DNA from: Paraphysomonas bandaiensis
Taxonomy: Eukaryota > Protista > Chrysophyceae
Reading direction: 5' to 3'
NCBI GenBank assembly: GCA_965644295.1
Contig: CBFFRP010000159.1
Location: forward strand, 61,676 to 125,675
Length of the DNA stretch: 64,000 nucleotides
Under the pieces are notes generated by a model, which was given only the letters and a program-made list of their open reading frames with translations, did no database searches and was not told the origin of the DNA. The position numbers and the translations under genes were made by a program. Each line of letters starts with the position of its first letter. The first letter of the stretch is position 1. Below, piece after piece: positions 26,216-60,985 of this stretch.

Positions 26216-27703
26216 TCATTTATCATTCACATCCATTATATCATCTTCTGCAACGTTGTAGACTGATTCATGGGATTGATGTAACGGCATAGCCCCATTA
26301 CAAATACTATTCGGTTGTACATCACAATCACCACCAACATTCTCCACACTATGCACTACGGGGTTCGCTACGACCGAAGCAATATGATCTATCGTGATTG
26401 GAGACGTTCTGAGCTGGTGCTTGAAAAGAATCTTGCTCCAGGAATCACCCTCAACTCTCTTTCCAGAAAGCACCTATAAGTAACACCACATGCCCATTAA
26501 TCAGAAAATGAAACTAGAGCAAGATACGTTACACATAAAGCGTAAGCACACACACAGGAGTAAACAGTAGGTAAGTGTACAACTAAGTACTTGTACTTAT
26601 ATACAGGTACAACCTTGTGCATCTGAAAACCCGTCACATGGGGTACCCCAGAGTCTGTGTAGCCAACAGAGGCCACAGCCCCTCTCACTACATCCCCGCA
26701 GACTACAGGTGCAGTCTGTAATTGAGAGGGAAGGGGAACAAGTGGGATACCTTCAAAGGTATGTAGCGCCAATTGGTGAGGTTCTGTGGAGAGCTGGAGC
26801 GCTTTGAGTGCAATTGTTTCCTCACCGTCGGCATCCAGATAGGTAGTGATAGTGGCATCCTTCCACAATAATACGAGAGGGGTCAGCCCTATTTCATATT
26901 GTCCCTCGCGATGATAGAAGAGGAGGCCATTCCTCGGATAAGGCAAAGGAGATCGATATGCTTGCTCCAGACCTGTCAGTGAGCACTCCCAGTGGGGTAC
27001 TGCACGGAAGGAGTGGGCAACTGCACCTCCACCGGATAACCCGGCCGTCTCTTCAAACTTCGTATGCAGCCAAAAAAAACGGAACTCCGCTTCACAATCA
27101 TAGCAGTCCATATCGTTCCAATTCATGATATCAAGAGCATAGTAAGTGTTATCTGCAGGAGTATATATGCACTCAAGTATAGCAGATGATCCATGTCGTC
27201 CAGTCATACCTCCTCCAGGTAGAGGTGACTTAAAACTATGCAACATACATCCATTCTCCAAGTAACTAATAGTCCGCCCTCGAGAAGATACAACAACACA
27301 CCTCTTACCCTCTGGTCGTGCAACTACATACCAATTGCATCTATTAGCATGATATGATCCTAAGTCTGAAGGTATCTCCACCATCCATTCAGGTACACAC
27401 AGCTGACTCTCTTTTATATACTTATCTTTTCGATTACGTCTATTTGAAGTGTCTTCACGAGTCGGGGTATCTTCGATTAGACGTCTCTGATTGGCTAGAT
27501 CTCGACGAAGTGACTTTTGTCTTTTTAAATATTCGTTTCGTTTAGTTTCTTGTGAATACTTATGACTACGTTGCTTGTATCTGTAATACACATCCAATTA
27601 GAAACGAAGAGTGAGATTCACATACCCACTATACTGTGTATAGAATCTCATGGACAATATTAGAATATGGTTTGTACCTGTCTTTCAGTCGAAACTCAGA
27701 CAT
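26216..27703 (-). CDS. SNUPN: Snurportin-1 (m3G-cap binding snRNP import adaptor)
   Basis: N-terminal R-YKQR...QETKRNEYLKRQK (IBB-like), plus PEWM, RPEGKRCVVVSSRGRT, DCEAEFRFFWL and GLLFYHREGQYEIGLTPLVLLWKD motifs. Confidence 0.9.
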
Positions 27704-33204: not shown

Positions 33205-33327
33205 GTTTATTCTTGGGAATGTTGTATGGGTATATGGGAGGTTATGTGACCAGGAGGGAGTTTGTTTGAGTGGTTTGACACGTGCACCTATAAGTGTTTA
33301 CACAGCAATACACACACACAGACCAAC

Positions 33328-33502
33328 TACATACATACATACATACATACATACATACATACATACATACATACATACATACATACATACATACATACAT
33401 ACATACATACATACATACATACATACATACATACATACATACATACATACATACATACATACATACATACATACATACATACATACATACATACATACAT
33501 AC
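33328..33502. repeat. (TACA)n microsatellite
   Basis: Perfect tetranucleotide array. Confidence 0.99.
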
Positions 33503-34016
33503 CTACACTGTACTCCAGTACTCTGCTCTGAAAGAATTGTATTATTATACCGTATTTCAAATATGCTTTTTTTGACTTTTACAACAAAACCGGGATTTTT
33601 TAACAGAAATCAAAGATAGAGTACAATCTGAGAAAATCAGTTGGAGCAAACTCCAGGTATTCGGTATTCTAGATCACACCATATGAATGGATGCAGAGTG
33701 TATCAACCCCGTAGCCCAGCATATACAACCGTATACCATATACGTATATACTACTAGTATATAGAAAATTTCATATTCGAGGGAGACCCTACACACATCC
33801 GTATTCTTGCACCTCTCTATACTATTGTAGGTATACTGGATCCACGCATACTGTATGTCCGATGCCTACATCGCCTCTGGTGACATCATGCAGCTATATT
33901 CTTGCTTCGATCGCATCTCCATATCTGACTGCATGTAACTTCATCCATATCATTGACTTATATTCAACTACTGTATTGGCAGATACTCATCCCGTGTAGC
34001 CCTATTGTCCTCTACA

Positions 34017-36708: not shown

Positions 36709-39613
36709 TCACTTCTCTGTGGACCATACTCCATACAGAGAGCCCTTAGTATCAAGTCGTCTGAGATTAGGTGCCTCTTCTCTCAGTCTCTGTAGCCGAT
36801 GTGACGAGCTGTTGCCGTCGCATGATCGAAATACACGTATACATTCAGAAATAAAGTCTACCCATAGGCATTTCCTATCCATGGTAGGGGCATAAATTAC
36901 CCTGTTGTGAGGTGACGTTGATTGGCCAAGCAAGGTGGAGATCCCACCTCTGACTGCGGAGGAAAGAGATGAATCCGTGAGTAGTATGGCACATGACTGT
37001 TGCAAATCGGAGGTTGTGGTGCAGCTATTGCTACTCCCTCCACCCCCCGCGCTGTCCCAGGAATAATGAGAACACTCTAGGTTTCGCATCTCGATGTGAA
37101 AGGCGTAAGTCAGCTGGTACTCCTTTTCCCCTTCAGGAGAAGGACACAGACGCATTGCGAGCAGAACATGGCTGAGAAGAAAAACTTGAAGTATATGGGG
37201 GCGGCCATTGTTGACTCCCCATCGTCGTTGTGTGTCTCCCGCCCGTCTGCCTGAACCGGCAGGCCTAAATAAACACATGTACCGCACGTTAGAACCAATC
37301 GTACATACAGTTACAACACTAGACACCGTAGCATCTTTACCTCTCGAAGAACCAATCAACTGCAATCAGATGCTGCATATGGGGGTCAGACGTTACCGAA
37401 GACAGCCAGGTACTAGAATTATTATCCAATGCAGCTAATACAGCCTCTTTGCTAGACCTGGTGGCACATCGAGATAAAAGAGATTCGGAAAATTCCTGGG
37501 CATGCTGATCGATAACTAGGCGCAGATGGGATACTGGTGAATTTGATGACCCCACACTTACAGTGTCTGTATTGTCCTCTACACTATCTGTAGCCTGAGT
37601 TCCGCTGCTGTCGATAGATTTCTTCAGCTGTTCCTCATCAACAATTGCTTCCAGCAATTCATAAAGACCCCACCAATTAGGTTGTGTTAGAAATACATTC
37701 CGCCGCATCAGCAAACCCATTGTTCGCTCGTGTTTGCCGCTATTTTTCGAATGATTAAGCGCATAAGTTGGGGGACATTTCATTCCTCCCGCCACTGTGG
37801 CCTGCTGATTAAGTCGTGTAAATATTTCACCTATCAATGTATTCACGAGAGCCAATTGGTTCTTTACTCTATATGTATCTTTGTCAGCCAAGTTAACGCT
37901 TAACACCTGATTGATTGATTCCACCCATTCGTCTCGCTCGTGAACGCTTCCGGCGCAAAGATATACAGCTGTGTTCGGAGAAACCACAACAAACCAGCTG
38001 CTATCGTTATCGGAGCACAGGCTCGGTAATGGGAGACACACAGTATCGGACCCCTTATTCAGTGGCAACGTAAACTCCAGGCGTAGAGTTCCGGGAGCCA
38101 GTTCACGCTCTTGTGGCGAATTCGGCTCCGGGGGAGGATGCTGAGGAGGGGTTTGAAAAGGGCGCCGGGTCTTTACCACAGGCGGTGTGGGGTCAGCTAT
38201 AAATCGATCTTTTCGAGAATTAAGAGATCTCGCCGCACTATCATCCGAAATGGGCACACGAACTTGCACCTCACTAGTGGCTACGAGAATATCTGACATC
38301 AAATAAACATGCACACGCCTCACCGCACCGGCGCAACCTTTTCCACTCTTTACATGCCTCTTTAGAAATCCCTTCCGCAATATACTCCGACCACTACTCG
38401 CCAGAGCAGGTACTTGGTGCCCTAAATTACCACGAACTAATTGGTCGTACAGATCATGAAGATGCTTCCTGTGCTGGTCTTCTCTGATAGCATGGTAACA
38501 CCCCAGCAAACATTTAGACATATCCATGAACAGTTTCCTCGCCAATTGGTAGGTAGATTCGAATACCTCAACATAATCTGAATCAACAAGTCGAAGCGCA
38601 CCCCCAACGCACTCGTATATCTGCTTGCAATTCAACAGATACCACGGGAGTCGTTTCGCGGGCCTGGACAACAGTGACATTAAACTTTCTCCTACACGCC
38701 CCTCTACTGACAGGACGTGCTCACCAAACTCAGGCTGATCCCGCACGAGCGATGACAGTAACTCCAACACTCTCGGAAGCGACCCAACACAGCCTCTAAA
38801 CACCCGGAAGGATGGACAAAATTTACGAATAGTTGTTATGAAAGCTGTATGTGCACTCAAAATATCTGGGAGTGCCTCGTCCATGTGAAAACTGGCATGG
38901 GTGTTCAGTGATCGCTTCCAGTGGGACACGCGCAGATCTTTCAGGCTCTGTAAATGGAGCTCACACACAGTTTTCACACCATCTAAGGATGCGACAAAAC
39001 TTAAAACTGCAGCGGACTCCATGAATTCTCGCACTGGTGGCATACTAATGTACCTAAAGTCCTGCAGAATCACAGAAAGCATCTGCATAACATGTACGAA
39101 GTCTTGTTCAGAGGCGATGCATGCCTCCATGATAGCGAAGAACTTGTGGAAAAAAGGAAAACAAGGATGCAAACGCTCAGCGTTCGGATTGTATGGTGTA
39201 CAAGTATGGTGTCTGTAGGGCTTCACCAGTATATGTACACCCCAACAGGACTCGCAGAAGTAAGAGTCCGCATTGTCACATTGTTCACACCGAAGACTGG
39301 CAGGCACCGAGTCACAATTACCACACATCATATGCGGTAAGCTGGAGAGGTCTGTTTGTTTCTCTTTTAAACTCTCCAAAACATCACAAGTGTCACTGCA
39401 TTCTTGATATATATTTACGTCGACTGAAAATACAGCACAGAAATCATCTCGATTGATGTCTATAAGCCGCTCTGATGGTCGCCACAGCTGTCCTCTTTCC
39501 TCTGGAGTGAGAGGGGTTGATAGAAGAGGACTTATGAGACATGTTTCTTCATCACCAGTGTGGTCGGTGGTGTATTCTTCTTCAATTACCCCCTGCAGTA
39601 TCTCCATATCCAT
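36709..39613 (-). CDS. B-box + RhoGEF (DH) + PH domain protein
   Basis: B-box CGNC...CEQC...FCESCWGVH..H; DH motifs EACIASEQDFV and LLSRPAKRLPWY; PH region ILRKGFLKR...VYLMSDILV...ERDEWVESI; further PH-like 3' exons. Confidence 0.8.
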
Positions 39614-39782: not shown

Positions 39783-39995
39783 TGTATGTATGTATGTATG
39801 TATGTATGTATGTATGTATGTATGTATGTATGTATGTATGTATGTATGTATGTATGTATGTATGTATGTATGTATGTATGTATGTATGTATGTATGTAGG
39901 TAGGTAGGTATGTATGTATGTATGTATGTATGTATGTATGTATGTATGTATGTATGTATGTATGTATGTATGTATGTATGTATGTATGTATGTAT
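39783..39995. repeat. (TATG)n microsatellite with a short (TAGG)3 interruption
   Basis: Direct observation. Confidence 0.99.
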
Positions 39996-40048
39996 CTAGT
40001 ATATCAGATATGGTTAGCTATCCACTGCATACAAACTCATGCATATAC

Positions 40049-42354: not shown

Positions 42355-42884
42355 ATACTAGCACCATTAAAACAGGGAATATACAGCCTTTCAACAACGT
42401 CAATATTCGGTTCGAACAGAAGCTACCTCTTATCATAATTACGATATTCGATATTGGCAGTCATTTATATTGTTATCCAAATACACAATTTATTCAACTT
42501 TCATAAAAGTCGAGGTAATACCAAAACCTGGTAAAGCAATTTCACCAGGTTTCATATATAAATATTGAGTTATTATTTTACTGTAATTTGTATCTGAGAG
42601 GTTAAAGATAAAGAAAAAGTCGCAAGTATAGTTGTTATTAGCAGTATTTATTGCGTTAAAAGTTGGCCCTGCTATTATTACTTGTGTTTTGTAATATCAT
42701 ATTCTCATATATAGCTACATCTGCTTCGCTTGAGACTGCAAACGCTCCAACCGAATAGCCTGATTTTGGATACATTGCATACGCATATAGCTATCTTTAC
42801 CACTACTACTTACAGTAGTATTAGTACCTATGCTCGGAAACGACGCGGCAACAGCCGCTGGGGGCACATTGCTAGTAGGTGGAG

Positions 42885-45800
42885 AGCTAGGGAGAGCGTC
42901 CCGTGGTATCTGTACTGCTGACCCCTACAAGCTCCTATGCAACATCCTTACGAAATGGGTCACTAAAGCCAGAGCCAAGGACCATACTGTCATTGTCGCC
43001 GGCGACTTCAATGGCTCCATGGAGACAAATCCTAAAGGCAGAGACATACGACCACTTGCCGACAAACTCCAACTGGCTGCACCACTCCATGAGCTTCTCC
43101 TACCCAGGAAAACATATCATACCTTCCACAGATTAGACAAAGGAATATCGCGGATCGATCATATTCTACACACGCCGTTACCTCCGAACATGTCTGTTAC
43201 GGACACTGGCTGCCTTGACTCCCCCTCATTACTCGCAGCAGCCTTCGATCATCGACCGGTCTGGGTCGGTTTCACCGTACCAGTCAATCTTGACCCTCGA
43301 CCACCGGAGTCGCACCTCCGAATCCCCCCCCGTCTCAATGTAAACCCGAAGGACTCCAAGGAAGTACAGGCATACACCGCAAGACTCCTCCAACTTCATG
43401 CACAACTACCACATTTAGACAACGGATCGACTGCCATACTCCCTCCTGAGGTGGCAGCCAACAGACTAGCGGCCATCCATCACATAACCCTCCAGGCTTC
43501 GCTTGAGGCGAAGCGTCCTGCATGTACACATAGCACACGCCTACACGAACGTTGTCAGCGCACACGCTCAAAGTTCAAGAATGGCTTTTCCCCGGAAATG
43601 AGAGTAATACAGGAAGGAATGCTCATGGTTTTGCGGATTATCCAAAAGATGTTCAATTCTGCTGGATACAAACGGCATGGATGGCGCGGCCCCCCGGCAA
43701 CCACCCCCACCCACGAAATCATCACTGCATGGTTCGCCCGATGGGACTCCTATCTCAGGAGTTCTCAGGGTCACATCAAAGGCATATCGGACATCAACTT
43801 CTGGTGCAGCCACCGCAACGCGGACCCACGAGTAATCCTGGGTTGGAACGCAAAGCAAGCCACCAAGAAAAACCTTCTCCGAATTGCCTTGCGACTGAGA
43901 GGACTTCTTCATGGAAGAGCCAGGACAGAAATGCGGACTAGACTCACGGCTCGCACCAAGCAGATGGAGGCACTGCTACAGCAGAAAAGACTTCAAGCAA
44001 TTCTTCAGAAAATTGGTCTCAAGGTCAAAACACCACTCCGACTTACCACGGTGAAAACAACGGACGGACACATCCTCACAACGCCGCAAGACATTCATGA
44101 AGGCATTAATGCGCACTTCCGTGAGCATCATGCCAAACCTCCTGGACTTGACCCTGTAGCACAACAGCTCCAGGATGACCCTACATGGTGGAAATCACTT
44201 CTTGATCCGGGCTCAGCGACATGCCAGGAACCACTCCACCCCCGCTCGAAAATTCCTCTTCCCCTGCAACTGGGGTTACGACGGGCCCTTTGTACCAAGA
44301 CCACTCCGGCCATGGCAGCCACACTCAAATCTACTCTTGCAAAAGACATCACCCAGGATGAATTCTACTGCACACTTCACTCTCTCTCCTTCAACCGCGC
44401 GCCTGGACCCTCAATGGTCTCCTCCAACATGGTCAAATCCTGGCCACCGGTAGTTCAGCGAGAGGCTTACATCCTCACCAGATCTCTCTGGAAACATAAA
44501 CATGTGCCCATTTGGTGGAGAGACAGGGTAATGTCTCCCATTCTCAAGAAACCAGGAGAATCCTCCCTCACTAATCTCCGACCGATTGGTCTGCTTGAAG
44601 TCAGTAGGAAAATATTAACAAGGATAATCACTCATAGAATTCTTACCGTATGGGAGGAACAGAAAGTTTTGCATCCGTCCCAGCATGGTTATCGCTGGAG
44701 GAACGGGACGGACACAGCGATACTACGGGTACTCGCGGCTGCAGAAGAAGCAAGACGAAAAGGCGACCAGCATATATGTACACTCTGGGACTTCAAGAAG
44801 GCCTTCGACTCAATTGCGCCTAACCTCATGCGTCTCGCGTGGGCACGACTGGGCGTTCCGGACGATGTAGTTGACTGGTTTGGCAACTTAGATGCCGGCG
44901 GTCTAACATTTCCCTGGACACCATTCATGGCAAACAACATAGAGCCACGTTCTCTCCTTGACCTCCTGTCCGCAGACGGCCACTTCATTGCACTATTCAG
45001 TCTGGGTTTCGAAGCCGAAAGGGGTATCACCCAAGGGGGCACAGAATCCACATGCGCCTGGGTGGCACTCTACGACATCCTTCTCACGTGGCTGGACATT
45101 GAACTGTCAACAACGAGTCCAACGTTACCAACTATTCAACTCACGACTCCGACTACAGGCGAAATAAAGATCTCCTTCGCGGATGATCTTAACACAATAG
45201 CTAAATCCATACACGCTGCCCAACTCATTGCCCAACAAATATCTGCGTTCTGCGTACTTTCGGGAATGGAACTCTCTATCCCCAAAGTAGTTTGCACAGT
45301 GTTTCCGATCCTACAGGATTCCAACAAGTCCTCCGACCCCATTGGCTACAACATTCTCTACGACTGGTCATGGCGCCCACACCCAGTCCCTATCCAAACA
45401 TCACTAGAGTCGATACATTACCTCGGAGCAGACCTTTGCAATGGAACTCAGGTTGGGACCTGAGAGCCAAACTCTAAATAAGCTAAAACTCGCTTTAACA
45501 GAGAGAATGCTGCTTATTATTAACCTATACTACTTCTGCAGTACTAAATGCTTCTCGGCACCCCAAGAAACTAAAGCACAACTCACCAGCTATGCAGTTC
45601 AGTACTAAACAGAAAAGTGACGAGCTACAACAACCAACAAAGAGAGAACAAGCTTAACTAAAAAGAATGACGATGCGCTTGAGCGTTGACAGCCACACAG
45701 TGACTAAATCCAAATTTTCTGCGAAGGAGTGACGATATTTATGAATGTTCTTGGAGAATTCTTCTTCTTCATACTCTACACATTAATGTATGAACTCTGC

Positions 45801-48800
45801 CGTATACACTCTCAACTGCTGCTCATCTAAACGATAATGGGCACTCGACCAATCAGAATTGAGAATAGGGAAAGCATTGGTTCAGTATTCGCTTCCTGTA
45901 TTTATACAGTGTAGGGTACAGTATACTGATACTGTATACCTACGAGTGATATAGACGCATACATACGATAGAGGAATACTGCAAATACATCATATACAGT
46001 GTATACGGTATACAGTGCGGTTGCTGAGAGGAGATGCAGCATGCTCCTAACTGCCATCTTAATGTGATTGCAGCACACATACCGAACATACTTATAAGCG
46101 AGCAGATTATCGTGAAAATTGAACAATATGTCCAGAGATGCATTACCGTTGTACTCGCTAACGACCACTGCTTCTTCAATTGCCGATATAGAGTACGAGG
46201 CGATATAGTATATTGACTGTGCAGCATCAGTACGAGGGTCCACACAGTGTGATGATCGAATGGAAGGTACCGTAAAATCATGTAATCAGTACGTACAGTC
46301 ATGACAGGTGATATACAGGTCCTTCTTCCAGACAGAGGCGGTCTATGGCAACCCTCAGCCACCAGTAATTGGAAATGGATATATGAACCACACAGAGGCA
46401 TATAATAACGGTAAAGAAGCCGCAGACACATCCACTGATTGCAGGAAAAGCACGTGTACACTGTTTACGTACTATAGGTGATTGTAGAAGCTACATATGT
46501 GCATTTACAGGCCACTGGTTTAATATAGAGCCATGTACACATATATACCATATATTAGGGTAAGGATACAACATATATATATATTCTGTAGAAGGGTCAC
46601 AACCTATACATATATGTGTGGGTGAAAGAGAGAAACTAGGTTAGTATGTACGCATATATATGTATACATCCAAACTGTAATAATAATAACTCTTCAAAAG
46701 AATTATATATCACAGCCCAGCATATAAAATAGAAGATAGTGCTGATGATTATAAACCTGCTTTAAACCTGCACAGGTTTACACCTTCCTCTCACAATCAC
46801 AGACAAGGCCTCCCATGACTGGTGTCTAAAATACCTGAAAGTCGTGACCACACACCTAGGGATCAAACAGGCCTCAGCCGGCTGTAAAGTCATGGTTATC
46901 GAGACCCAAATCATACCGACTTTGCTCTATAGAGCCACCAAAGCTTCATGGCCGCTACACTGGTACAGAGAAATTGACGCTGCTTGCGCAACCCTCTACA
47001 GAAAGGCCCTCAGTCTAGGCCCTGGATACCCCACGGAACTGATCTACCTCTCACTCAAGCACAACGGATTAGGTATGAAACGTTTCTCAGACTCAGCGCA
47101 GGAGCAAAAATGGGGATCTCTACAGCGCGCAATAACCCTCGGGGGAGAAGCAGGTCAAGCAGCACATTTTCTACTCACTCAGACAACAGAGCCACAGCCC
47201 CAATACCACCACTATGTTCTCAGCCTCAGGGAATGGGGAACGGAATTGGGCCTTACCCTTCAGGAACCTGAGCCCCCCGAACCACAGGATGAACACATGC
47301 TGACCAACCTAAAACAAGAACTCGGCCTTAATAGTGTCCAACCAGATACTTTCAAGGCTATCTTCACAGATGGATCATACACAGCCAGTGCGCTCTCCAC
47401 TCGTCGCCTCACTCATGTCAATCCGCGAACCCGATGGACACACCGAGGAGGTGCAGCGGTCGTCTACTTACCCCCAGAAAATGCCTGGGAAGATGGTACA
47501 ACCACAATACTACGACTAGATACACCCTTTCGTGACGTGCCCGGTTTGGACTCATACGCATATGAACTCATAGGCACAGCCATGGGGCTTATACTCTCAA
47601 CACGTATTCCCGAACACATAAGAAGCCACACAGACTGTCAGGCAGTGTGCACCCGCACTGAGGAAGCACTCTCCACAAGACGCAGAGCTCTCGGTCACCG
47701 TGCAAAAGGGGTACTACTCGAAAGCATCGCAGCCAGCAGAGATTGCAAACGACAGGTGACCTGGGTGAGGTCTCATCCCGAACGACGTACCACAGATGAA
47801 ACGGAGTGGACGTTTGAGGACAAGGGCATCTATATTGCGGACGCAGTTGCGGGTGAAGACTGGCATGAAGTCGATCGCATCCTTGGAAAAAATAACTACA
47901 CTGTCTGCACAATTGCGATTGACAGTGCCATCGAACGCTTACTAACTGCTGGATTATGGCACTGGCGTATGCACAGTACAAGACGGCCATACTACTCTAG
48001 CCCACTCCTTACTAATTTCCAGGATCTCTGCGACCTAAGGACACTTGAGAACTACACTTCAACCAGAGATCAACGCTACGGACACAATCCTGATCGAGCG
48101 CCTGGCTACTGGACCAATAGCGGAGTACACCTCCCGCGCAAACTAGCTCAAGCGGATGGCAGTGCATCCAAAGACAAACTCAGCTCAAATCTACGCCAAA
48201 GAATACTCAACACGGCACTGACATGGGACAAATCTTTCTGCATAGGGAGGAACCGGGCCAAAACCAAACAGGGGCTTGACCTGACCAAAGCCGCATGCTC
48301 TGACTGCGGGTTTCGACTAGATTCCCTAAAACATATGTGCCTCGACTGCACACATGAATCCATCACCCAAATAAGGGAAACTGCATTTCAATCGCATAAA
48401 AATGTGCTCCACGAAATACAGAGAACTCAGACCTTACCCAACTGGATCACATCTGCACTACGGAGACTCTCCAGCAGAGCCTGGAATCCCTCCATCCCAC
48501 AGGTCGAGAGATACTGGACTGGAACCATCACAGCAGCCCAACTGGAAACGGTCTTCGAAGATGCCATACACAACCACCTGACGGCACACAGTCTACGGAA
48601 CCTAGAAACAGCGGTTATTAATCTCCTGCAACCGCTTTACACTGCAGCGAAGCTTATGCTACAGGATCGCGGTTGTCGCTATATCACCATGTCCAAAAGG
48701 CCGCCCAGGCTACTCCCGAGACCCCGTCCGAAACGCAGTCAGTCAAGACAACGTCCGAGAGTCCTTCGACTACTAGGGGTCCAACGAAGACCCCCCACAG

Positions 48801-49329
48801 CGTCCCCGACTCCAGACACACGTGCACACCTCACAGATCCTACCCGACAGAGCACTGGACTGCCCAGACCTCCACAACGCCGACGGCTTCGACAACTCTA
48901 TCTACACCCGCGGCCCCACAGGAGCACAGTAACACAGACTACAAACCCAACTCCTCCTCCCAACAATCCCCACCACTCTCAACCCACACACCTGGAACTA
49001 GGTGCACTCAGGACCCTAATCCAGAACGCTGAGCCCCCTCCAACACCAATGGAGACCCATCCCAAAGGGAGACCCCCAGATCAATAGCGCCGGTGAGTCC
49101 ACGGACACACGACAAAGGCGAATTTCATATCACACAAAAAGAACGGAAGTGGTTGCACCTTGGTGCTTGCGGCGACGCACAAGCAGCTTTCGTAGCGTTA
49201 AATAGTAGGATAAAAGAGTTTGTATTGATTAGTTACGGGTAGTGGTCTAACTAGTATGACTAGCATTCTTCTAGCCACTAATTGCTGCAAGGTCTCAACG
49301 CCTATTGCTAAATAATCAGACATTCACTA
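42885..49329 (+). mobile_element. 5'-truncated non-LTR retrotransposon (APE-RT-RNase H-CCHC), 13-bp TSD, split by an insertion
   Basis: APE AGDFN/SRIDHI/FDHRPV; RT NLRPIGL, DFKKAFDS, GITQG, FADD, YLG; RNase H IFTDGS..AYEL..HTDC..VRSH..IAD; Zn knuckle CSDC..H...C. TSD CTAGTAGGTGGAG at 42872-84 and 49330-42; empty site at 61980-92. Confidence 0.95.
45437..46782. mobile_element. Solo-LTR-like insertion (TG...CA, 1346 bp, CCTT TSD)
   Basis: CCTT at 45433-36 and 46783-86; termini TGCAA.../...TTACA. Removing it restores the LINE frame YLGADL|PLTITDKA. Confidence 0.75.
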
Positions 49330-50232: not shown

Positions 50233-52739
50233 TTATATCTTTTCAGTGTCGGAATCATTGCCCTTGAATGGTGAGACACTCGAATAACTCACTGATGGAT
50301 TGGCCACTGCAAAATATAGTTAAGCATGTAATCAGCGAAGACTAGAATAGTACCTATAGTTGCTAGTATTTTCTCTACTCTGTCGAGAGTACAAGGCTTC
50401 ACAACCACGTCATTGGCACCTGAAGTCATGAATCCAGATATATCTTCCGGTGTAGCATTTCCAGTCAGAAAAACAATCATTCCCTGGTATCCCATTTCGC
50501 GTATCAGTAATGTAGCTTTCGTACCACACATCTCAGGCATTGTGGAGTCCATAAATATCAAATCAAAAGGTGATCCACCTTCCATAGCCTTCTGTACACT
50601 AGCAACAGCCTCCACGCCGTTCTCGGCCTGTGTTACATGCCCAACTTTCGGCTCGATAAGACGACTCATCATTTTTCGGTTTACCGCTGAATCATCAACA
50701 ATAAGTACTTTGATACTGCGCACAATAGCGGAATCAGCTCTGGCAAAGATGCGAGCCGACACACTTGACTGACACTCAAAATTGTGAATGGACCTACACC
50801 GAATGTCCTTGGTATTTTCATTCATCGTGGCGACGTCTAGCTCTACGAAAAACATTGACCCTTTGCCTGGCTCCGACGTCACACCTATACGACCTCCATG
50901 AAGATCCACAATCTTCTTAGATACTGCATCACACAACAATTACATAGAACACGAGAATCATGCGAACTTACTCCACAATCCTATACCAGACCCACCACCG
51001 TTCTGAAGCTGCGCGGCATTAAACTGGACAATTTCTCCGAAGAGCTTTCGTTGGTTATCCTAATATAATCGTCAGTTTTAGATGTCAATAAACATTGCAT
51101 TGCAGTCTACCGGTGATATGCCCACTCCAGTATCATGTACTTCAATCCGCAGTACACTGCAGTCTACATCGTGTATTTTTGGTGTACTCATAGTTGGCCA
51201 CAGATCTACCCCTAGTTTACTTCTATTCAGAGCGACTTTGCTTCCACTGAAGGCTGTTAGTAAAGGGTGCATACTTTGGGAAACCGAAAGCGATAAAGAA
51301 TGGCCCGTGGGCGATACACTAGCTGAGAACTTCGACGTAAGATACGCGTACACATCTACTTTTCCATCCTTTGGGGTGAACTTCAGAGCATTCGAGATAA
51401 GGTTTCGCAGTACTTGGCTAATTTTTCGACAGTCCACTTACACTTTTACCTTATCAGTCACCATTGCTGGATCTACATGAGTATCTCCACTGTGAGTGAA
51501 AATAATACCTTTCTGTCGAGCCTGTTCAGACTAAGTATAGTAATGTCAAAGTAACTTCAATCTCCATACCTGCACTCCAAAAGGGTCGGCGACACTTCTA
51601 ATTAAATCACTAGCAGAAACCAATTCCTTCTCCAATGTGACGTTTCCAGCCTCAAGTTTATTAGCAAGCAAAAACTCATTCAGAATCTCTATAGCTACTT
51701 TGCAAGAGACAGATACGTCGCTTAAAATGCTTCTCACATCTACCACATTCTGGATACCTTCCTTGCATTCCTTGGAGAGCAGTTGTATACCCATGTACAC
51801 GGCGTTGAGAGGAGTCCGGATCTCGTGAGACATATAGCTCACATAGTCTCTCTTGGATTCAATGATATGCTATATACCAATTAGTTCATTATTAGACACA
51901 TCACTTAAACCAATGACAATATGTATCACCTCAGCTATAGCTTTCTCTTGTCTCGCCTGTCTACCTGGAATAGTGGTTGCCACAATGCAAACAAACATAT
52001 CAATAAATCCAGCATATGCCATATCACTTGTAAGTGAAAGCACAAGAAGTTTAAGAAAAATATTTATAGAAAAAAGAGCTGGATATAGCGCTGCGTAAGT
52101 TGCAGCTTGGAACGAGCAATTTATGGTGTTGTGCCATCGAATAGCGGCCATCACGCCAGTAACTATCGCCGAGGTAATAGACATCACTCGACCAAACATA
52201 TTCCACCAATTGGAAACAAGATCAGGTCTAAATGTACTCCATAGAAGTGTATGAAGTGAAAAAAATGTCATTAGTAACGCACAAGCAACAGAAAAAATAG
52301 TTTTCCAAGAGCGATTGTCATCTAGAACGTATCTCAAGAGACAACCCCTGAGCATTATCTCACGTGCAACCAAGCCGCTAAATGCCAGAGGAAGTACATT
52401 GGATTCTTCCAAACAAGAATATCCAATATAAGTCACAACGCCTGGAAGGGTTAGTGATATAACTATTAACCATCTTGGAATAGTTGCTCTCAGTGGCAGT
52501 TGAAAATCTAACACAGCATCTAAAGTTATGGGCAGGGCAATAGAGAATGTAGCTATGGTTGTTGTGTTAAATATCTGCCAGTTTTGTAGAGATAATGATT
52601 CAAATAATTGAGCCCCATCAAACCCTGTATTTAAATATACGGGAATGAATGAACATGTAGAGGCCAGCAGAGTCATTGTAACACACACGTCACAGGCATA
52701 AGTGCGGAGTAGTGTCCGTTGATCTGACATGGTTTTCAT
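50233..52739 (-). CDS. Membrane-bound hybrid histidine kinase (TM region, HisKA, HATPase, receiver), multi-exon
   Basis: Multi-TM N-terminus; H-box MSHEIRTPLN; N-box LRNLISNALKFT; G1 DTGVGI; G2 GGGSGIGLW; receiver IVDD..IFMD..LTG..VKP. Confidence 0.92.
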
Positions 52740-52936
52740 AGCAGCTTTATTAAATGAAGATATTACGGGAATCGTTTGTACGTGTAATACATACATCCAT
52801 ATATATATGGTCAAGGAGGGAGTTAAAGTGTCCCTTCTTATCGAGATATGTGGATACGAATGAAAAGGGATACAAACGAACTGAGAAGGGATACAGACAC
52901 ATGTTGGGATGTGTGAGATGTGTGAGGCCACTAATT

Positions 52937-55161
52937 ATAGTGAGACAAAAGACAAAAAGACAGAAGACATTTTTCTGGAAAAATGTCTTCTGTCTTTGAA
53001 AAGCTGTAGTTATAGGAGGACAAAAGACAGAAATCCGTCGAAAGACAAAATGTCTTTCTGTCTTCGGCCGACAGAAAGACATAAATATGAGCAAATTTAT
53101 GTCTTTTTGTCTTCAAGGACAGAAATCGAGAGTGGAAGACATTTTTACACAATGGAGCTTCATTAATAGTTATACACCTCATAAACAGCACCAGGCGCAA
53201 TGATTTATAGTCTCAAGGATTGGCAGAAGCTTGCCATTGCTTTGGCAGGCATGGAGACCCATGGTGTCAAGACCACGACGATTACAGAGCTTGGAGAAAC
53301 ATGTCGGTGAAACTACTTACGACACGCCGCACTCCTGTCAACAATGAAAGCACTGACATCTACATCAATGAAACCGTATCCCTGACCGAGTATATTCCGG
53401 CAGGAACCATAACTATTATCAGATTGTGAAAGGTGAAGAGTGTGTGTTGATTTAAACATACATATACATACATACATACATACATACATACATACATACA
53501 TACATACATACATACATACATACATACATACATACATACATACATACATACACTAGGAACTCTTTGGAATCAACTCTGAAACTATTTGGAAGAAATAAAC
53601 AACACTGGAAATAAAGAAGGAAGTCAGTCATTAATGAGTTCACTCCAGATTTTGTTATCCTTTTGAATAAGGTATATATATCTTATAAAGTTATTCAATA
53701 GTAATATTTGTTGATGCAGGACGAAACAATACCGTCAGGCGTGCAGATGAGAGAGTTGCTCGTCAAGACGGTGGAGCTCTCCTGGAATCGTAAAGAAGCT
53801 GAAAGGATAAGAAGAGAGCTGGCACTAACAGCAACGCCAACCAATGGTAATTATCTTGGTCCGATTGATTGTCTGTTATCCATGCAAGTTCTGTTTGTTT
53901 TATACATATGTTGTTACTATATTATACACGTTAGTTATAATGACGTTTGTCAGTGTCAGTTTTAAATTCACAACTTTGTTTATTACAATTGACTAATAAT
54001 TATCACATGATCTAACTGTAAGATGCATTTAATCTTGCATGTAATCACAGATATATTGAATGGGATCTAACTACACAAACAACTGAAATGTAGTGTATGT
54101 TGTACATATAACATATTGGCAACATATTGTAATAAACTAAATATACACATTCAACTTCAATATTGGGTTAACAGAAACTCACTTCTATCTTAAGTATCAA
54201 TTATGATATTGGCAGTCATATGTATAGATATCGTTATATTACAAAATTATAGAGAAACCACAATGATGAGTCAACTATCAAAAGGAGTTCATCAAACACT
54301 CCAAGTCATCATCCGTCTTTCGTCTGATGTGGAAGATTATAATGATGTCAGTGCATGCGATCTATCTTCATAACCTGGACTTCGAAACAAGAGCAAGAAT
54401 ATTACAGGAGAGTTTAAGTGCCATATTTGATGCTGTATAGGAAGTTAAGGGCAGTAACACCCAGCTCTTTCAACCCAGCTCTTTCAAGGTGTCCGTCACC
54501 ACGTCGTGCGTATCAGGATTGTGCGCCTCATCTTACTATCATTCAAATCAGGTGCACTCGCAGAGGCTGAGCGTGTTTATATAAATGTGATGATGATGCT
54601 AATCAAGGCATTAAAAAGCATCGTGCTTGAAACATTTGATACGTAATTCCAAAACGCGTTCTGAATTTCTTGCCTGATGCAGTGTGACATGGTATATAAT
54701 ACAATACCAAAAGTCATACCTTCACAAGTTGTGGGGTCTCTTATCCTTGTATTCCTCAGCAGGAGTCCCCATGGTGTGTTATCGTAGCCAGTCCGTTCGT
54801 AGACATTTCTTCTTGCAAAGATACGATCCTAACTGGACGCTGGAGATTGCTTCATGAGCTGTTTGATCAAGGATGTCCTGCACAGACAACTTTCGGGACA
54901 ATGCACTCACACATGAAATATCATGCTATCAACTTTACACAGTCACTTGTGACTTATGTCGATGCTTAATGCATTGCTTCGCAGTATATTCAGTGAGATC
55001 TAGCAAGCAGGGAATGAGTAGAATTCAAAATTCTAAAAAAAATCGCTGTTTTGTCTTTTGTCTTTCTGTGTGCACTATAATTACGGCTTCGTTTGCACCC
55101 GACAAAAACAATTTGGATGAAAAAAAATGTCTTTTGTCGTTTTGTCTTTTGTCTCCACTAT
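52937..55161. mobile_element. Non-autonomous TIR DNA transposon A (2225 bp) flanked by AATT
   Basis: ~38-bp imperfect TIR ATAGTG(G)AGACAAAAGACAAAA(A/C)GACA(G/A)AAGACATTTTT at both ends; many subterminal GACA(A/G)AA repeats; AATT at 52933-36 and 55162-65. Confidence 0.85.
53456..53552. repeat. (TACA)n microsatellite inside transposon A
   Basis: Direct observation. Confidence 0.98.
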
Positions 55162-55403
55162 AATTCTAGAGGCGGAAAAAACTGTAGGCAGAGGAAAAAA
55201 CTCTAAGCATTTTTTTCGAAGTATTTTCACATTCCAGACACCATATTACACACAGTTTCATAGGTTAAGGTACCCCACATATGGCAATCATACGATCCAC
55301 CATGTGACTATTGTACAACTCTCCAAGTACCTTTGGTAAGGATATGCAATTGTTTAAGTGATGTATTGACTGAAGTTGTTAGTTCTTTTTCATTAATTCG
55401 AAA

Positions 55404-57429
55404 ATGCTCTCAACTCGTTCAGGAGTAAGTCGAGCGCCTCCAACAGGTAAAACACATGAAGAACGGCTGAACAACGCAATATATTATCATGAAAAGCTGG
55501 GCATGAGTATGGAAAAGGCTGCGATCCTAGCTTCTGTTAACAGAAATACGCTGTCAGCGTAAGTAATTTAAAACTGAACCTGTGTATTGTTGACTCAACT
55601 TTCGGTGCAGTGCTCTTAGAAGGCAAAAGAATGATGAACCAGTTCATGTTTCCGTAGGAAGAAAGCGACTTTTGTCGGATAGTGGTGTGGTTAAGCTGCA
55701 GAGAACGATTACTGACCTGTCGATGGACCTTGGTAGTCCTGAGGCGAGTATAGAGTTTGGAAAACGCTTTCAAGATTCAGTAAAAGAGGAACGCAATAAT
55801 CGCGTTGCGAAAGTCATTTATTCGGCTAGAACAGAGAGGAAATATAAACAGCGGGCGCAATTACTTACTTATCAAGCAGAAAAAAAGCCCCAGGGGAGAA
55901 TCGATGCATACAGGAATTTAAGGACGCCAATTTCTTTTTGTGCAATGCTCACCTACTTGCAGACCTTTGTACCAAGGGAGCTATTTTTCAGCAGTGATGA
56001 CGTTTCGATATTGCTGAATGGTATGCACGAAAAGCCAGTCGTTCTGACAACCGAGGCTGCTCTCCAGCAATTAAAAGCGTTAAATTTATCCGTGTCAAGT
56101 CAGGAAACTCATCAAAAACAGAGAGTCGTGTCCTTCAACTGTACTATTGCTGGAGATGGGCGCCTTATGTGCACCGTTATTAAGTTTGCGGATAGAACAT
56201 TTTCAGACTTTGATGGGAAACCGCGGCTTTATAGAGTGGATACTGGCCTTTATGTGTGCTTATATCCTTATGGTATTCCAGATTCTACAGTGGATAAACA
56301 TGTCTATCAAGGAGCTATTATTCCAGAGGTTAATTCTCGCCGCGAATCTCTTCAGAATTCACGCCGAGAGGTTGAAGTTGTTTTATCTCCTGAGGATGGT
56401 GCAGTCGTTTACCCTGGAGTGGTTTCTTCAGAAAACGGACATAGCAGCTCTTCAACACATGAATATCTTGTCCTTGCCTGCGATGGTGCCAGTGGACAGA
56501 TTCAAGCCATCGAGAATTACTTACATCCACGAAGCCAACGTAAGGGTATGAAACATATCTGGGCGAAATACGCAGGGGGTTGTAGTATGATTCAATCTGC
56601 GAATGACAAAGGTTCATGTCATCGCACCCTCCACAAACAGTTCCATTCACCGCACTTTAAGTATGATAATTCTGCTGACCCTCCAGGGCAGGAATGGGCC
56701 GTTGTAAAGGAGGTGTTAAAAAGGTATCTGCGTTTGGACTCCTTTAAAACGATATGGAAGTGTATGTGCAATGCTAGGCCATTTTTAAGCAAATCATTTA
56801 ATGAGCAATCAATTCAGCATGCGTTTGACAATGCTGGCGTTGTAATGATTGCAACTGGGTTATGTGATGTTGTTACCATTTTGAGCCACTGCCCACACTT
56901 CAGAGAATTGTCCGAGGAACAAGTGAATTTCCTTCTAGGTACTTTACCTCGATTCTCTAAAGTTTTTGAGGAGTATCGTTATATACCAGAGTGTATATTT
57001 GAAGAAATACTCAAAGGTGACTCAAACATAGACGGCATAGATAATTGCCCACATCGAGTTGGAAAGCCGCTGAACAGATTGGCGGTGAATCGACAGCGAT
57101 GTTTACTTCTCGGTGATTCCAGTCTGTTAGAGCATCAACAAATGATGAAAGAGGATAATGATTCCAACTTTATTAATACCAAATGGAGGACAGAAAGGTG
57201 TGCAGCAGAAAGGTGTAAAGAAAAACAAAAACCTGTGAAAACTACCAGATTACGGCGGTGCTCTGTGTTGGTATGTAGAACAACAGATCCTGGTACACCG
57301 AACAATAGATGGATCAGCTGTCCCACAAAAAATTGTCGCCAGATTGTCTGTGGCAAGTTGCAGTGCAGAGAGCAACTAAGCATCCACATGGAGTCTTGCT
57401 GTGGCATCCAGCAAGTTGATATGGCGTGA
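55404..57429 (+). CDS. pogo-like DDD transposase, 657 aa, one 52-nt intron (55559-55610)
   Basis: Exon 1 has an HTH_psq-like segment (RLNNAI...MSMEKAAILASVNRNTLS) followed by GRKRLL. Candidate catalytic residues FSSDDVS, LACDG and QSAND (40 aa between the last two). C-terminal Cys/His finger. Confidence 0.8.
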
Positions 57430-57477
57430 ATGTGTTTATACGCAACACGTATGCGTACATTATATCGAACATCGAAC

Positions 57478-57548
57478 CTTTGTATTTGCTATCGCTTTTG
57501 TATTTGTTACCGCTTTTTTATTTGTTACCGCTTTTTTATTTGCTATCG
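57478..57548 (+). repeat. 18-bp minisatellite x4 downstream of the transposase
   Basis: TTT(G/T)TATTTG(C/T)TA(T/C)CGCT units. Confidence 0.85.
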
Positions 57549-59026
57549 AACTTTGTTTGTATTTGTATCTCGTGATTTAATTTTTGTTCACATGCGACTT
57601 TTTGTAATAATAGCTTGTATTTAATCTGTGCACTTTTGTGGCGTCATTATTTATCCTGTGTCGTTATGTAATAGTACTCCTTCATTTAGTAGTATATTAG
57701 TAGAGTATAACGATTGGAACAAGAAGGCTGTCTTTAAACCACAAATATCAACTAAACGGTCATGATAACAATAATATATATAGGTTGTGGGTGAGATTAT
57801 CAGAGATGATACGTAACAGTGTAGCAGTAGTAGAAGTCATTGGAATCGTAAATTACAGAAGCTTGTTGCACATATAATGAAGGCACACTATCTAAGGATG
57901 AATAATAAAGGGGTTACGTATTCTACATGTCGCTATAAATGTTGTCTGTCAGTTTTATACGGTCACAACTCGCATAAATATCTCTATAAACTCGCATAAT
58001 TTATCTACATATAATCGTATTTCCAGACCAACAGTGAAAGACATATTAACCTGAACAAGAAAATGAAGTTAAATTATTTATAATAACTCACTATAAACAT
58101 CCAATTTGATTGGGTAGGGTTGATATCATATCATACGACATTTCGTTACAAGTGACATAAGTGCGAACTGTATTGCTTTGCAAAGTAGCAACTCATCCAA
58201 TATGGCCTTAATATTTCATCAAAGCATACTTACATGAATCAAACCATTATAACAGTATCATAAACAGTCATTGAGGTTAAATTCACTGCAAAATAGGACT
58301 ACTACACCCGTGGTTGGAAGGGGTTTGGGACCATGGGTGTCAATACCGCATATAGAGCTCAGTCAATGAGTGAACATAATTCCAACAAAATAAGAGATGA
58401 ACGTCAATATCATGATTTCATATCACTCAAATATTAAGAATAATACGATTCTTTGAATTTGGGGACATGTGGGATCATCAAGTGCAACAAGGAAGATGCA
58501 ATTAGGGAGAGGTCTCCTACAGTGACCTGTGCATATTTCTTGACCGTTTTTCAATGAATCCAGAATAAGAACTCATGATCTCATCTTTGCAATCACAACA
58601 TTGTTATCAGCAACTGGTCTCTGCTATGTACCTCACAGTGAGTTCAGGAGCTCTCCATCAACTGTGAATTTTGATGCAGGATAACAATTGCAATCTTACA
58701 ATCAAATTTCCACCAAAACTTGTGGAAGTTGGACTCCACACCTCCAGAATAGCATGTTCTATTGGTAACCCAGTGTGTTTATGTGGTATGTCTCAATGTT
58801 GGAGCATATGATTGACATATGGAGGGCACTTTAAACTATGAAAGTGTGTGGAATACGGTGCCCGGAATGTGCAAATGACTCAAAAAAACTGCCTAGAGTT
58901 TTTTCCTCTGCCTACAGTTTTTTCCGCCTCTAGAATTAGTGGCCTGAGGGGCGTATGGGATTGCCTGGTGTACGTCTGTGCCCCCCGTCGGTAGGATGGA
59001 TGTATAGTATAGTACTACAGTACTAC

Positions 59027-59276
59027 TGTACGTATGTACGTATGTATGTATGTATGTATGTATGTATGTATGTATGTATGTATGTATGTATGTATGTATG
59101 TATGTATGTATGTATGTATGTATGTATGTATGTATGTATGTATGTATGTATGTATGTATGTATGTATGTATGTATGTATGTATGTATGTATGTATGTATG
59201 TATGTATGTATGTATGTATGTATGTATGTATGTATGTATGTATGTATGTATGTATGTATGTATGTATGTATGTATG

Positions 59277-59310
<34 letters not shown>

Positions 59311-59490
59311 TGTATGTATGTATGTATGTATGTATGTATGTATGTATGTATGTATGTATGTATGTATGTATGTATGTATGTATGTATGTATGTATGTATG
59401 TATGTATGTATGTATGTATGTATGTATGTATGTATGTATGTATGTATGTATGTATGTATGTATGTATGTATGTATGTATGTATGTATGTA
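59027..59490. repeat. (TATG)n microsatellite, ~460 bp
   Basis: Direct observation. Confidence 0.99.
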
Positions 59491-59659
59491 CAGCAGTAGG
59501 AGTATGTGCACAGAAGTATGTCGAGAAACAGCCCCACATTTCTATGTAGGAAGGTTTTTATATAGTGGTAGTGTATACTTTGGTATACAGTCCTCTCTCT
59601 AGTTTGCTGTTAACCGCTCGTTCATTAAATAATCCACATACTATTGACCTGCACACACC

Positions 59660-60985
59660 ATGAAATCCGCTGGAGAACCCGCTCATGGAGTAGGTGATCG
59701 CAATACCTACTACAACAAATGGGACAAGTTTGCAAAAGAGTCTGTTTCAGAGATAGAGAATGAAGAGGCAGAGATTAAGAAGCAACTTGAGCAACAGGCT
59801 GCAGGTACTCCTGTCAGTTTGGCAGAGAAAAAGGACTTAGAGAAGAGGGAAGCCCTCAAAGAGGCGAAGAAGATGTGGGATGGTGTATCAGCTTCTCAAG
59901 AAGCCAGTAAAGTTATTGTTGAGGACGAAAAGGATTTGAAGCAGCGTGTGCTCGAGTTTGACACACAGTCTCGTCGAGTGTTAGTATTGAAGAATAATAG
60001 CGACTGTCATTACTATATGCCTCATGACCAGAAACTTGTGAAGCTTTTCGTTGAAGGGTGTTCGCGGTGCAAGCTACACATAGATGGCTCCCTCGTTACA
60101 AGCACAGTTGAGTTATCGAGATGTGAAGATATCACCATATCTTTCATGAAACAGCCGACTCATACTGTTCAAGTTGATATGTCTTCAAATGTGACAGTTT
60201 ACTATGCTGAGCGCCTCTTTGATGATAACTGTAAAGTGTATCATTCGGGTGTTCGAAACTTACGCGTGGACTATGACCATGTGGGTGATGGAAACACGAA
60301 ATACCAAGTTTTGGATGATATAGAGCTGTGTGAGATGCATGATAAACTGAATACTCCAAGTTCTGCTTTGACATCTGATCGTCAATTTGTTACGACTTTC
60401 GTGGACGGTGACTTGATCACCGATCTTGTCGTGAGAGATGCTGGTGGCCACCCAACTACTTTGCGTGAACTAGAACAGCGTAGGAAGGCTGTGGAAGCCG
60501 CTGCTCTGGAGAAGGGCTTGGACCTAAACTGCGAGCAAGTGCAGAAAATGATTCATGAGTATGACCCTGTGACCCCCCAGCACCAAGGCAGGAAACACAA
60601 GGACGAGGGAAACAAAGCATTCAAAGAGTGCGATTATGCTCAAGCTTCTGTTCATTACACCCAAGCCATCGACTGTCTACAGGTAGTAGCAGATGAAGCA
60701 GAAGGGCGGGATATACTCGCCACGGTATACTCCAATCGCTCGGCATGTTCTCTGAAGTTAGGTGACCATGCCACCGCCCTTGCTGATGCCAATGCTTCAC
60801 TAGAAATAGATCCCGACCACATCAAGTCGAATTTTCGAAAGGGACTTGCTCTCCACGCGATGGGAAGGTATCGCGAGGCGTGTCCAGTGCTAGGCCGTGC
60901 TCTACACCTGCAACCGAATAATGCACAAATCAAGTCTGCTTTGCAATTTGCCGAGCGCAAAGCTATGTTGGAAGGACAGAGGTAG
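59660..60985 (+). CDS. Intronless protein with a C-CAP/cofactor-C-like beta-helix and C-terminal TPR repeats
   Basis: Beta-helix repeats (KLFVEGCSRCKLHI, TVELSRCEDITI, TVQVDMSSNVTV) and TPR motifs KDEGNKAFKECDYAQA, YSNRSACSLKLG, KSNFRKGLAL. Confidence 0.85.
   Translation: MKSAGEPAHGVGDRNTYYNKWDKFAKESVSEIENEEAEIKKQLEQQAAGTPVSLAEKKDLEKREALKEAKKMWDGVSASQEASKVIVEDEKDLKQRVLEFDTQSRRVLVLKNNSDCHYYMPHDQKLVKLFVEGCSRCKLHIDGSLVTSTVELSRCEDITISFMKQPTHTVQVDMSSNVTVYYAERLFDDNCKVYHSGVRNLRVDYDHVGDGNTKYQVLDDIELCEMHDKLNTPSSALTSDRQFVTTFVDGDLITDLVVRDAGGHPTTLRELEQRRKAVEAAALEKGLDLNCEQVQKMIHEYDPVTPQHQGRKHKDEGNKAFKECDYAQASVHYTQAIDCLQVVADEAEGRDILATVYSNRSACSLKLGDHATALADANASLEIDPDHIKSNFRKGLALHAMGRYREACPVLGRALHLQPNNAQIKSALQFAERKAMLEGQR

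Follow-up and report, generated by a model that had tools for sequence, protein, structure and literature searches.

A transposon with a predicted mariner-like transposase and a 4-bp AATT target duplication, apparently nested in the inverted end of a second element of Paraphysomonas bandaiensis

Two DNA transposons, here called element A and element B, were studied in a 64-kb stretch of the genome of the chrysophyte Paraphysomonas bandaiensis. The whole stretch is referred to as the window, and the locus of the two elements was read directly over 52700-59200. An initial annotation of this DNA had described the string AATT-[A]-AATT-[B]-AATT, which is present in the sequence exactly as stated. 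The features of the locus, with lengths in base pairs (bp), nucleotides (nt) or amino acids (aa), are as follows:

52923-52925, no strand: TGA, left copy of the target duplication of element A, a direct repeat adjoining the GGCCACT tip
52926-58944, no strand: element A as a whole, with B nested in its right end
52926-53050, plus strand: left inverted end of element A, which aligns with the reverse-complemented right arm
52926-52932: GGCCACT, outer tip of the left end of element A
52933-52936: AATT inside the left inverted end of element A
52937-55161: body of element A, ATAGTG...CACTAT
55030-55165, minus strand: portion of the right inverted end of A that lies left of B, from the arm alignment and motifs
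55162-55165, no strand: AATT, left copy of the duplication of B and the original AATT of A
55166-58933, plus strand: element B, CTAGAGG...CCTCTAG, 3,768 bp, with the tips CTAG...CTAG
55404-55558, plus strand: exon 1, coding for a putative N-terminal helix-turn-helix of the transposase, with a weak HTH_psq match
55559-55610, plus strand: putative intron of 52 nt, GT..AG, the frame being kept only if it is spliced
55611-57429, plus strand: exon 2, with further DNA-binding helices, the RNase H-like DDD core and a Cys-rich C-terminal tail
58934-58937, no strand: AATT, right copy of the target duplication of B
58938-58944, minus strand: AGTGGCC, tip of the right end of A, severed by B
58945-58947, no strand: TGA, right copy of the target duplication of element A

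The boundaries of A were obtained by comparing its arms. When B and one AATT were removed and the right arm was reverse-complemented, the two arms matched from the extreme tip, GGCCACTAATTATAGTG, with the first 17 nt perfect, and the alignment, in which 101 of 135 columns are identical (75% identity), covered about 126 nt. The left tip reads GGCCACT-AATT-ATAGTG and is followed by subterminal repeats of the GACAAAAGACA type, and a second ATAG module lies near 53008-53040. The GGCCACT...AGTGGCC tips are directly bordered by TGA on either side, a 3-nt match that has a chance probability of 1/64. Without B, element A is about 2.25 kb long and non-coding, and each of its long inverted ends extends over about 125 nt. 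The inner A-like end (55050-55083, with AATT after it) corresponds to the second ATAG module of the left arm, which makes it a module of the subterminal repeats rather than a third insertion. A third A-type element at 55084-55161 was ruled out in the same way, as this part is a mirrored subterminal repeat of the long inverted end. The proposal that A uses AATT as its duplication was not confirmed, since AATT is internal to ends that reach GGCCACT with TGA/TGA outside. An outer Harbinger-like shell made of the GGCCACT arms and TGA/TGA had also been considered, and these arms proved to be the true boundary of A; the likeness to Harbinger is one of resemblance only, the duplication being TGA and not TWA.

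Contigs from four public runs, aligned onto 53560-58990, gave information on other copies of A. In the four runs, the summed contig depth over the interior of A was 10-50 times that over the reading frame of B, and this depth, which is not a copy number, fits A being multi-copy in the organism. The loose contig ends listed at 55165 all run past AATT into a tip of the AGTRGCC type. The X1 and X6 contigs read ...CACTATAATT+AGTGGCCT and stop there, as expected at a repeat boundary. Moreover, two X18 contigs read ...CACTATAATT+AGTAGCCTTACATTG, which represents another copy of A with a tip of the same type and a different flank. As AATT is followed by AGTAGCC or AGTGGCC in the other copies of A, the tip travels with A.

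Compared with the non-autonomous (Tourist-like) elements of PIF/Harbinger, A is similar in its 3-bp duplication, its ends starting with GGCC, its multi-copy and non-coding state, and the TTA found as the right flank of one other copy. It differs in having TGA instead of TWA, in a length of 2.25 kb, which exceeds that of a typical miniature element; no cognate transposase was found. Element A is possibly a PIF/Harbinger-type passenger element, a statement of resemblance and not of membership. An open reading frame of 353 aa with hydrophobic stretches and no Pfam match (51870-52931, minus strand) reaches the left tip of A, and A may occupy the 5' end of a minus-strand host gene there.

Element B has inverted ends at 55166-55303 and 58796-58933. 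Counted with the outside T and AATT, its inverted repeats are 143 nt long and 85% complementary, and the first 43 nt are identical. Its terminal 29-mer occurs in the window only at the two ends of B (0 expected by chance). At 55171-55210 (plus strand), a direct repeat of about 19 nt that contains an A-run occurs twice in tandem, and the pair is mirrored at 58889-58928; these repeats are likely binding sites of the transposase. The pre-insertion site, CACTAT-AATT-AGTGGCC, was read from the left tip of A and from B-free contigs (X1, X6 and X18). The repeat flanking B consists of AATT and no more, the neighbouring base being T versus G outward and C versus A inward. Removal of B and one AATT restores the end of A, and a duplication of TA leaves the arm 4 nt short, so B made a true 4-bp AATT duplication and not a TA duplication; here the arms of A and the B-free contigs bore out what the initial annotation had proposed. 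The same restoration indicates that one transposon lies nested in the other. The structure is probably a plain nesting, in which B was later inserted into the AATT within the right inverted end of A.

In addition, an X1 contig of 916 nt joins the left end of B to 116 nt that are foreign to 53560-58990, the match beginning at T+AATT. The contig probably represents another insertion site of B, once more with AATT. Relative to the reading frame, the 3' non-coding part of B (57746-58837) had a 5-15-fold summed contig depth and many joints, and it seems to contain further repeats, nested or captured. B is an autonomous cut-and-paste element, and its intact frame, the identical terminal 43 nt and the perfect duplication suggest recent activity. 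Motif and terminal-sequence searches gave no further copies of A or B in the 64-kb window. An exact-pattern scan of viral contigs gave no match for the end of B or the end of A, and the end of B had no match in a metagenome scan. The A-tip pattern gave three matches in viral contigs, all in a viral gene, which were judged to be due to chance.

The gene of B is predicted to consist of two exons, and an intact transposase of about 658 aa would result from splicing. The catalytic residues are D129 (codon 55996-98), D291 (56482-84) and D332 (56605-07). No Pfam match was found for the 605-aa main part of the protein (E ≤ 1), and an exact look-up of the 52-aa product of exon 1 returned no record. 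The relatives L001, L007 and L009 likewise have a short first frame (52-73 aa) and then the main frame, and in relative P0005 the N-terminal helices lie within one single frame. A word-based search gave 7 relatives with 25-46% identity, none of them with Pfam domains, and a second word-based search with a 43-sequence profile gave only 5 matches. The profile search over 1.84 billion cluster representatives gave 1,402 matches at E ≤ 1e-3, of which 186 reached E ≤ 1e-30. One member of the family is located in a chrysophyte genome, that of Ochromonadaceae sp. CCMP2298 (L016). A pattern scan of metagenomes guided by the family proteins produced 86 matches and no true relative. The family alignment was made of 43 near-full-length members, in which R96, D129, D291, K319, S325, D332 and H337 are invariant. 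The triad therein is D129-162-D291-41-D332; the initial annotation had given it as D-D-40-D.

The structure of the transposase was predicted with AlphaFold2 from the 43-sequence alignment, exon 1 being left out of the model. The model had a predicted local distance difference test score (pLDDT) of 88 and a predicted template modelling score (pTM) of 0.76. With Foldseek, the best match in the PDB was the Mos1 mariner transposase (E 1e-3, probability 0.99), followed by Metnase and Sleeping Beauty. VIA-align gave Z of 11.8-12.9 with the catalytic domains of SETMAR, Mos1, Metnase and Sleeping Beauty, over 192-200 residues with a root-mean-square deviation (rmsd) of 3.2-3.8. Against full-length Mos1, the aligned length was at the upper end of the 192-259 range (about 256 residues, rmsd about 5), with the DNA-binding domain included, and the model helices 11-116 aligned with the second DNA-binding domain of Mos1. 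The runner-up family was the foamy-virus (PFV) integrase, with Z of 7.8. Furthermore, the nearest models in the ESM Atlas were all from DDE_1/pogo clusters (template modelling score, TM, 0.45-0.5 across 320-380 residues), and a feature search also pointed to DDE_1/pogo with sub-threshold scores. The family profile had no match among the PDB sequences. By this model, B has a core of Tc1/mariner/pogo type in which no domain is inserted between its second and third acidic residues. The enzyme had been called pogo-like from its sequence, and the predicted fold agrees with this, both in its Z of 12-13 and in its DDE_1 neighbours in the Atlas.

The ends of the relatives were studied on DNA obtained for ten of them. 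Most contigs were too short or cut inside the ends, and three relatives were informative. The P0034 element was found on six metagenome contigs, with at least 4 different flanks per side. The flanks, read toward the tip, were AACT (three times), AGAT, ATAT, AGTT, AATT and AATG, so that 7 of 8 fit ANNT, a fit expected by chance for about 1/16 per flank. One of these contigs, L012, shows both flanks, a non-palindromic AACT/AACT around CAAG...CTTG. The Ochromonadaceae sp. CCMP2298 genome scaffold (L016) has ACGT/ACGT around CCAG...CTGG. L006 has ends that are perfect over 80 nt with the tip CCAG, and a reading frame with leucine-rich repeats has this element at its end. Just inside the CNAG tip, every end seen in the family carries a tandem pair of repeats, each 16-20 nt long and with an A-run; besides B, these are found in L006 (2396-2430), L016 (246-285) and L010 (720-753). 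The paired A-run repeats give a layout like the inverted repeat/direct repeat (IR/DR) type and are probably candidate binding sites of the transposase. In the contigs of L001, L002, L009 and L018 no terminal repeats were found, and those of L007, L008 and L017 are cut inside the element ends, without visible flanks. The rule of the family is a 4-bp A-N-N-T duplication, C-N-A-G tips and two internal repeats per end.

For the classification, B was compared with the known groups. With pogo, Tigger and Tc5 (DDE_1, with HTH_psq or HTH_Tnp_Tc5), B shares the N-terminal helix-turn-helix domains, which in B are putative, the compact RNase H-like core without an insertion, the triad ending in D, and the distance of about 40 residues between the last two acidic residues. 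It also has the S-x-x-Q-x-x-D stretch of Tigger and the Cys-rich C-terminal tail of Tc5-type proteins, and its model is similar to the structures of the mariner family. On the other hand, the B family differs from the pogo branch in the ANNT 4-bp duplication instead of TA and in its CNAG tips, and the second D of B lies in D-G-A-x-G-Q and not in D-N-x-x-x-H. With regard to the IS630-Tc1-mariner-pogo group, the fold (in the predicted model) and the triad were found, whereas a TA duplication and a profile match were not. B was therefore not filed as an ordinary pogo element, although it would work in the manner of one. The Caenorhabditis elegans elements Tc4 and Tc5 duplicate TNA at CTNAG, and the superfamily is therefore not strictly of the TA type.

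It is possible, though somewhat doubtful, that B is a member of the described Sola1 group and that only the stramenopile host is new. The published hallmarks of Sola1 are a DDD transposase and a 4-bp AWWT duplication, which in one of the species is AWDT (PMC3845634, after Bao et al. 2009). The AATT duplication of B and its DDD triad, invariant in the 43 sequences, fit these hallmarks, and a 630-aa Sola1 frame in a 2.8-kb element has been recorded (PMC3845634), a size similar to that of B. Sola domains are without a Pfam model (PMC5751038), which suits the empty Pfam scans; for the same reason, these scans argue neither for nor against Sola1. In a comparison by eye with the supplement of Majorek et al., the D-G-A-x-G-Q of B shares G-Q with Sola1-1_AP and Sola2-1_HM. 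Thus B and Sola1 are alike in DDD, in A at the first and T at the fourth position of the duplication, in the missing Pfam model and in their overlapping sizes.

Several observations argue against this assignment. In the profile-based classification of Majorek et al., Sola1-3 stand in RNase H clade E, and mariner and Tigger in clade A, whereas the core of B is mariner-like with its Z of 12-13. In the core blocks of the same source, Sola1-1_AP reads F-L-E-R-G-H-T-Q-S after the last strand. By eye, this G-H-T is absent from B, which has Y-A-G-G-C-S-M-I-Q-S-A-N-D at this place, nearer to the P-A-N-T-T-S-I-L-Q-P-M-D of the Tigger protein TIGD1. The duplications AACT and ACGT of the relatives (also AGAT) fall outside AWWT, so the central two bases are not limited to A or T in the B family, unlike Sola1. 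The published insect Sola1 ends start with GGACC (GGACCGTTTATT; PMC3845634; one family compared), whereas the tips of the B family are CTAG, CAAG and CCAG. In addition, Sola1 is best known from animals, and none of the 30 clusters that were looked up had an animal source. By eye, the core blocks are ambiguous, with G-Q shared and G-H-T absent, and a literature search gave no usable published structural placement of Sola1.

A further reading, given slightly less than even odds, is that B represents a lineage with the Tc1/mariner/pogo fold that has not been described before, its stagger having grown from the 2 bp of TA to the 4 bp of ANNT. The lineage would be marked by CNAG tips and two A-run repeats per end, would extend across marine stramenopiles, and would be missed by the transposase models now in Pfam. 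It might also be the structural link by which Sola1 itself would prove to be a derived mariner/pogo branch.

Some points weigh against the account, given above, of a nested locus with a mariner-like enzyme. The hidden Markov models (HMMs) of DDE_1, DDE_3 and Transposase_1 gave no match to any of the 43 family members, even with the threshold relaxed to E 0.1. The HMM comparison with pogo DDE_1 that had been suggested was thus negative for the sequences, while the predicted fold was mariner-like, and because no Pfam model matches the 43 relatives, the mariner/pogo assignment comes from the predicted structure only. The intron was predicted solely from the reading frame. The HTH_psq domain that the initial annotation had named appears in exon 1 as a match of E 0.018, which falls short of the Pfam cut-off. 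In this genome, a single B insertion has both flanks visible. In L006, the flanks are TGCT (2384-2387) and AACT (6312-6315) without a clean duplication, possibly due to an assembly chimera or to recombination between copies. For element A, the 3-bp duplication was seen at a single copy, with the chance level given above, together with the TTA right flank of the second copy; no transposase was linked to A, and its TGA differs from the usual TWA of Harbinger.

The initial annotation had taken A and B as one AATT-targeting family, stacked at a host palindrome, AGGCCACTAATTAGTGGCCT, and re-targeting its own flanks. This is very unlikely, although AATT follows each of the three A-type ends and each end of B, and the ATAG tip of A and its A-run repeats bear a loose likeness to the CNAG tips and A-run repeats found in the B family. 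Deleting both elements does give a palindrome of 20 bp, and this arithmetic was correct. However, the palindrome consists of the two 7-nt tips of A, AATT and one base from each TGA, and is thus made by the tips of A itself, as other copies of A carry AGTRGCC. The X18 copy of A has AGTAGCC after AATT in another flank, and the X1 and X6 contigs end after AGTGGCCT, so the tip moves with A. Furthermore, TGA/TGA adjoins the tips, the inner end is a subterminal repeat with a mirrored counterpart in the left arm, and no empty copy of the palindrome was found within the window. For tandem arrays built by self-retargeting there was no evidence, B being nested in A. Palindrome targeting and tandem arrays, the most exotic-looking part of the proposal, therefore do not hold.

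An ordinary TA duplication, with B ending in ATTCTAG...CTAGAAT, A ending in TAGTG...CACTA and AATT coincidental, is hardly credible: the junctions can be parsed as TA, T and A border the AATT of B on the outside and the match of the X1 contig begins with T+AATT, but a B-free site should then read CACTATAGTGGCC, whereas the left tip of A and three B-free contigs read CACTATAATTAGTGGCC, the right arm would start with GGCCACTATAGTG, 4 nt short of the left tip, and the non-palindromic AACT/AACT of L012 is unparsable as TA. The possibility that the B-free contigs are 2-nt excision footprints was rejected, as the left tip of A itself has the same sequence.

For the 4-bp ANNT duplication, the following mechanism is proposed. 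By analogy with the solved mariner transpososomes, a dimer of the transposase would bind the two A-run repeats in each end of B and excise the element at the CNAG tips. The 3' ends of B would then be joined to target phosphates on opposite strands with a 4-bp stagger at 5'-A-N-N-T-3', each subunit reading the same A on its own strand, and gap repair would give the 4-bp duplication. Such a reading of one base per subunit is suggested by the symmetry of the A...T requirement, which is like that of TA in mariner, with the two attacks 4 bp instead of 2 bp apart.

The remaining features of the window with an assigned protein are as follows:

4433-7168, minus strand: WDR35/IFT121-like intraflagellar transport protein
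26497-27597, minus strand: protein with a snurportin cap-binding domain
42830-45463, plus strand: reverse transcriptase of the long interspersed nuclear element (LINE) type, with endonuclease
59660-60985, plus strand: tetratricopeptide repeat (TPR) protein

Moreover, four long open reading frames of 750-1,380 aa without a Pfam match at E 0.001 lie at 13031-17182 (minus strand), 28466-30943 (plus strand), 37337-39613 (minus strand) and 46844-49087 (plus strand), and they may be unclassified mobile-element genes. An (ATAC)n array is located inside A at 53448-53552 and a (GTAT)n array right of A at about 59020-59500; a second inverted pair of such arrays lies at 33326-33507 and 39783-40000. ACAT and ATGT are 4-mers of the A-N-N-T form, and a link of the arrays to ANNT targeting is possible.

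The length of the target duplication is a first-line criterion in the classification of transposons and reflects the geometry of the strand-transfer complex. About 1,400 cluster representatives of this family escape Pfam, and annotation pipelines probably label them as unknown in protist genomes. The novelty of the family depends on the comparison with Sola1. If B belongs to Sola1, the gain would be smaller, namely a predicted mariner-like fold for Sola1 and a new host range. If a mariner-fold enzyme does make 4-bp ANNT duplications, the geometry can shift within one fold, and the family would provide a natural comparison for structural studies of how the target stagger is set.

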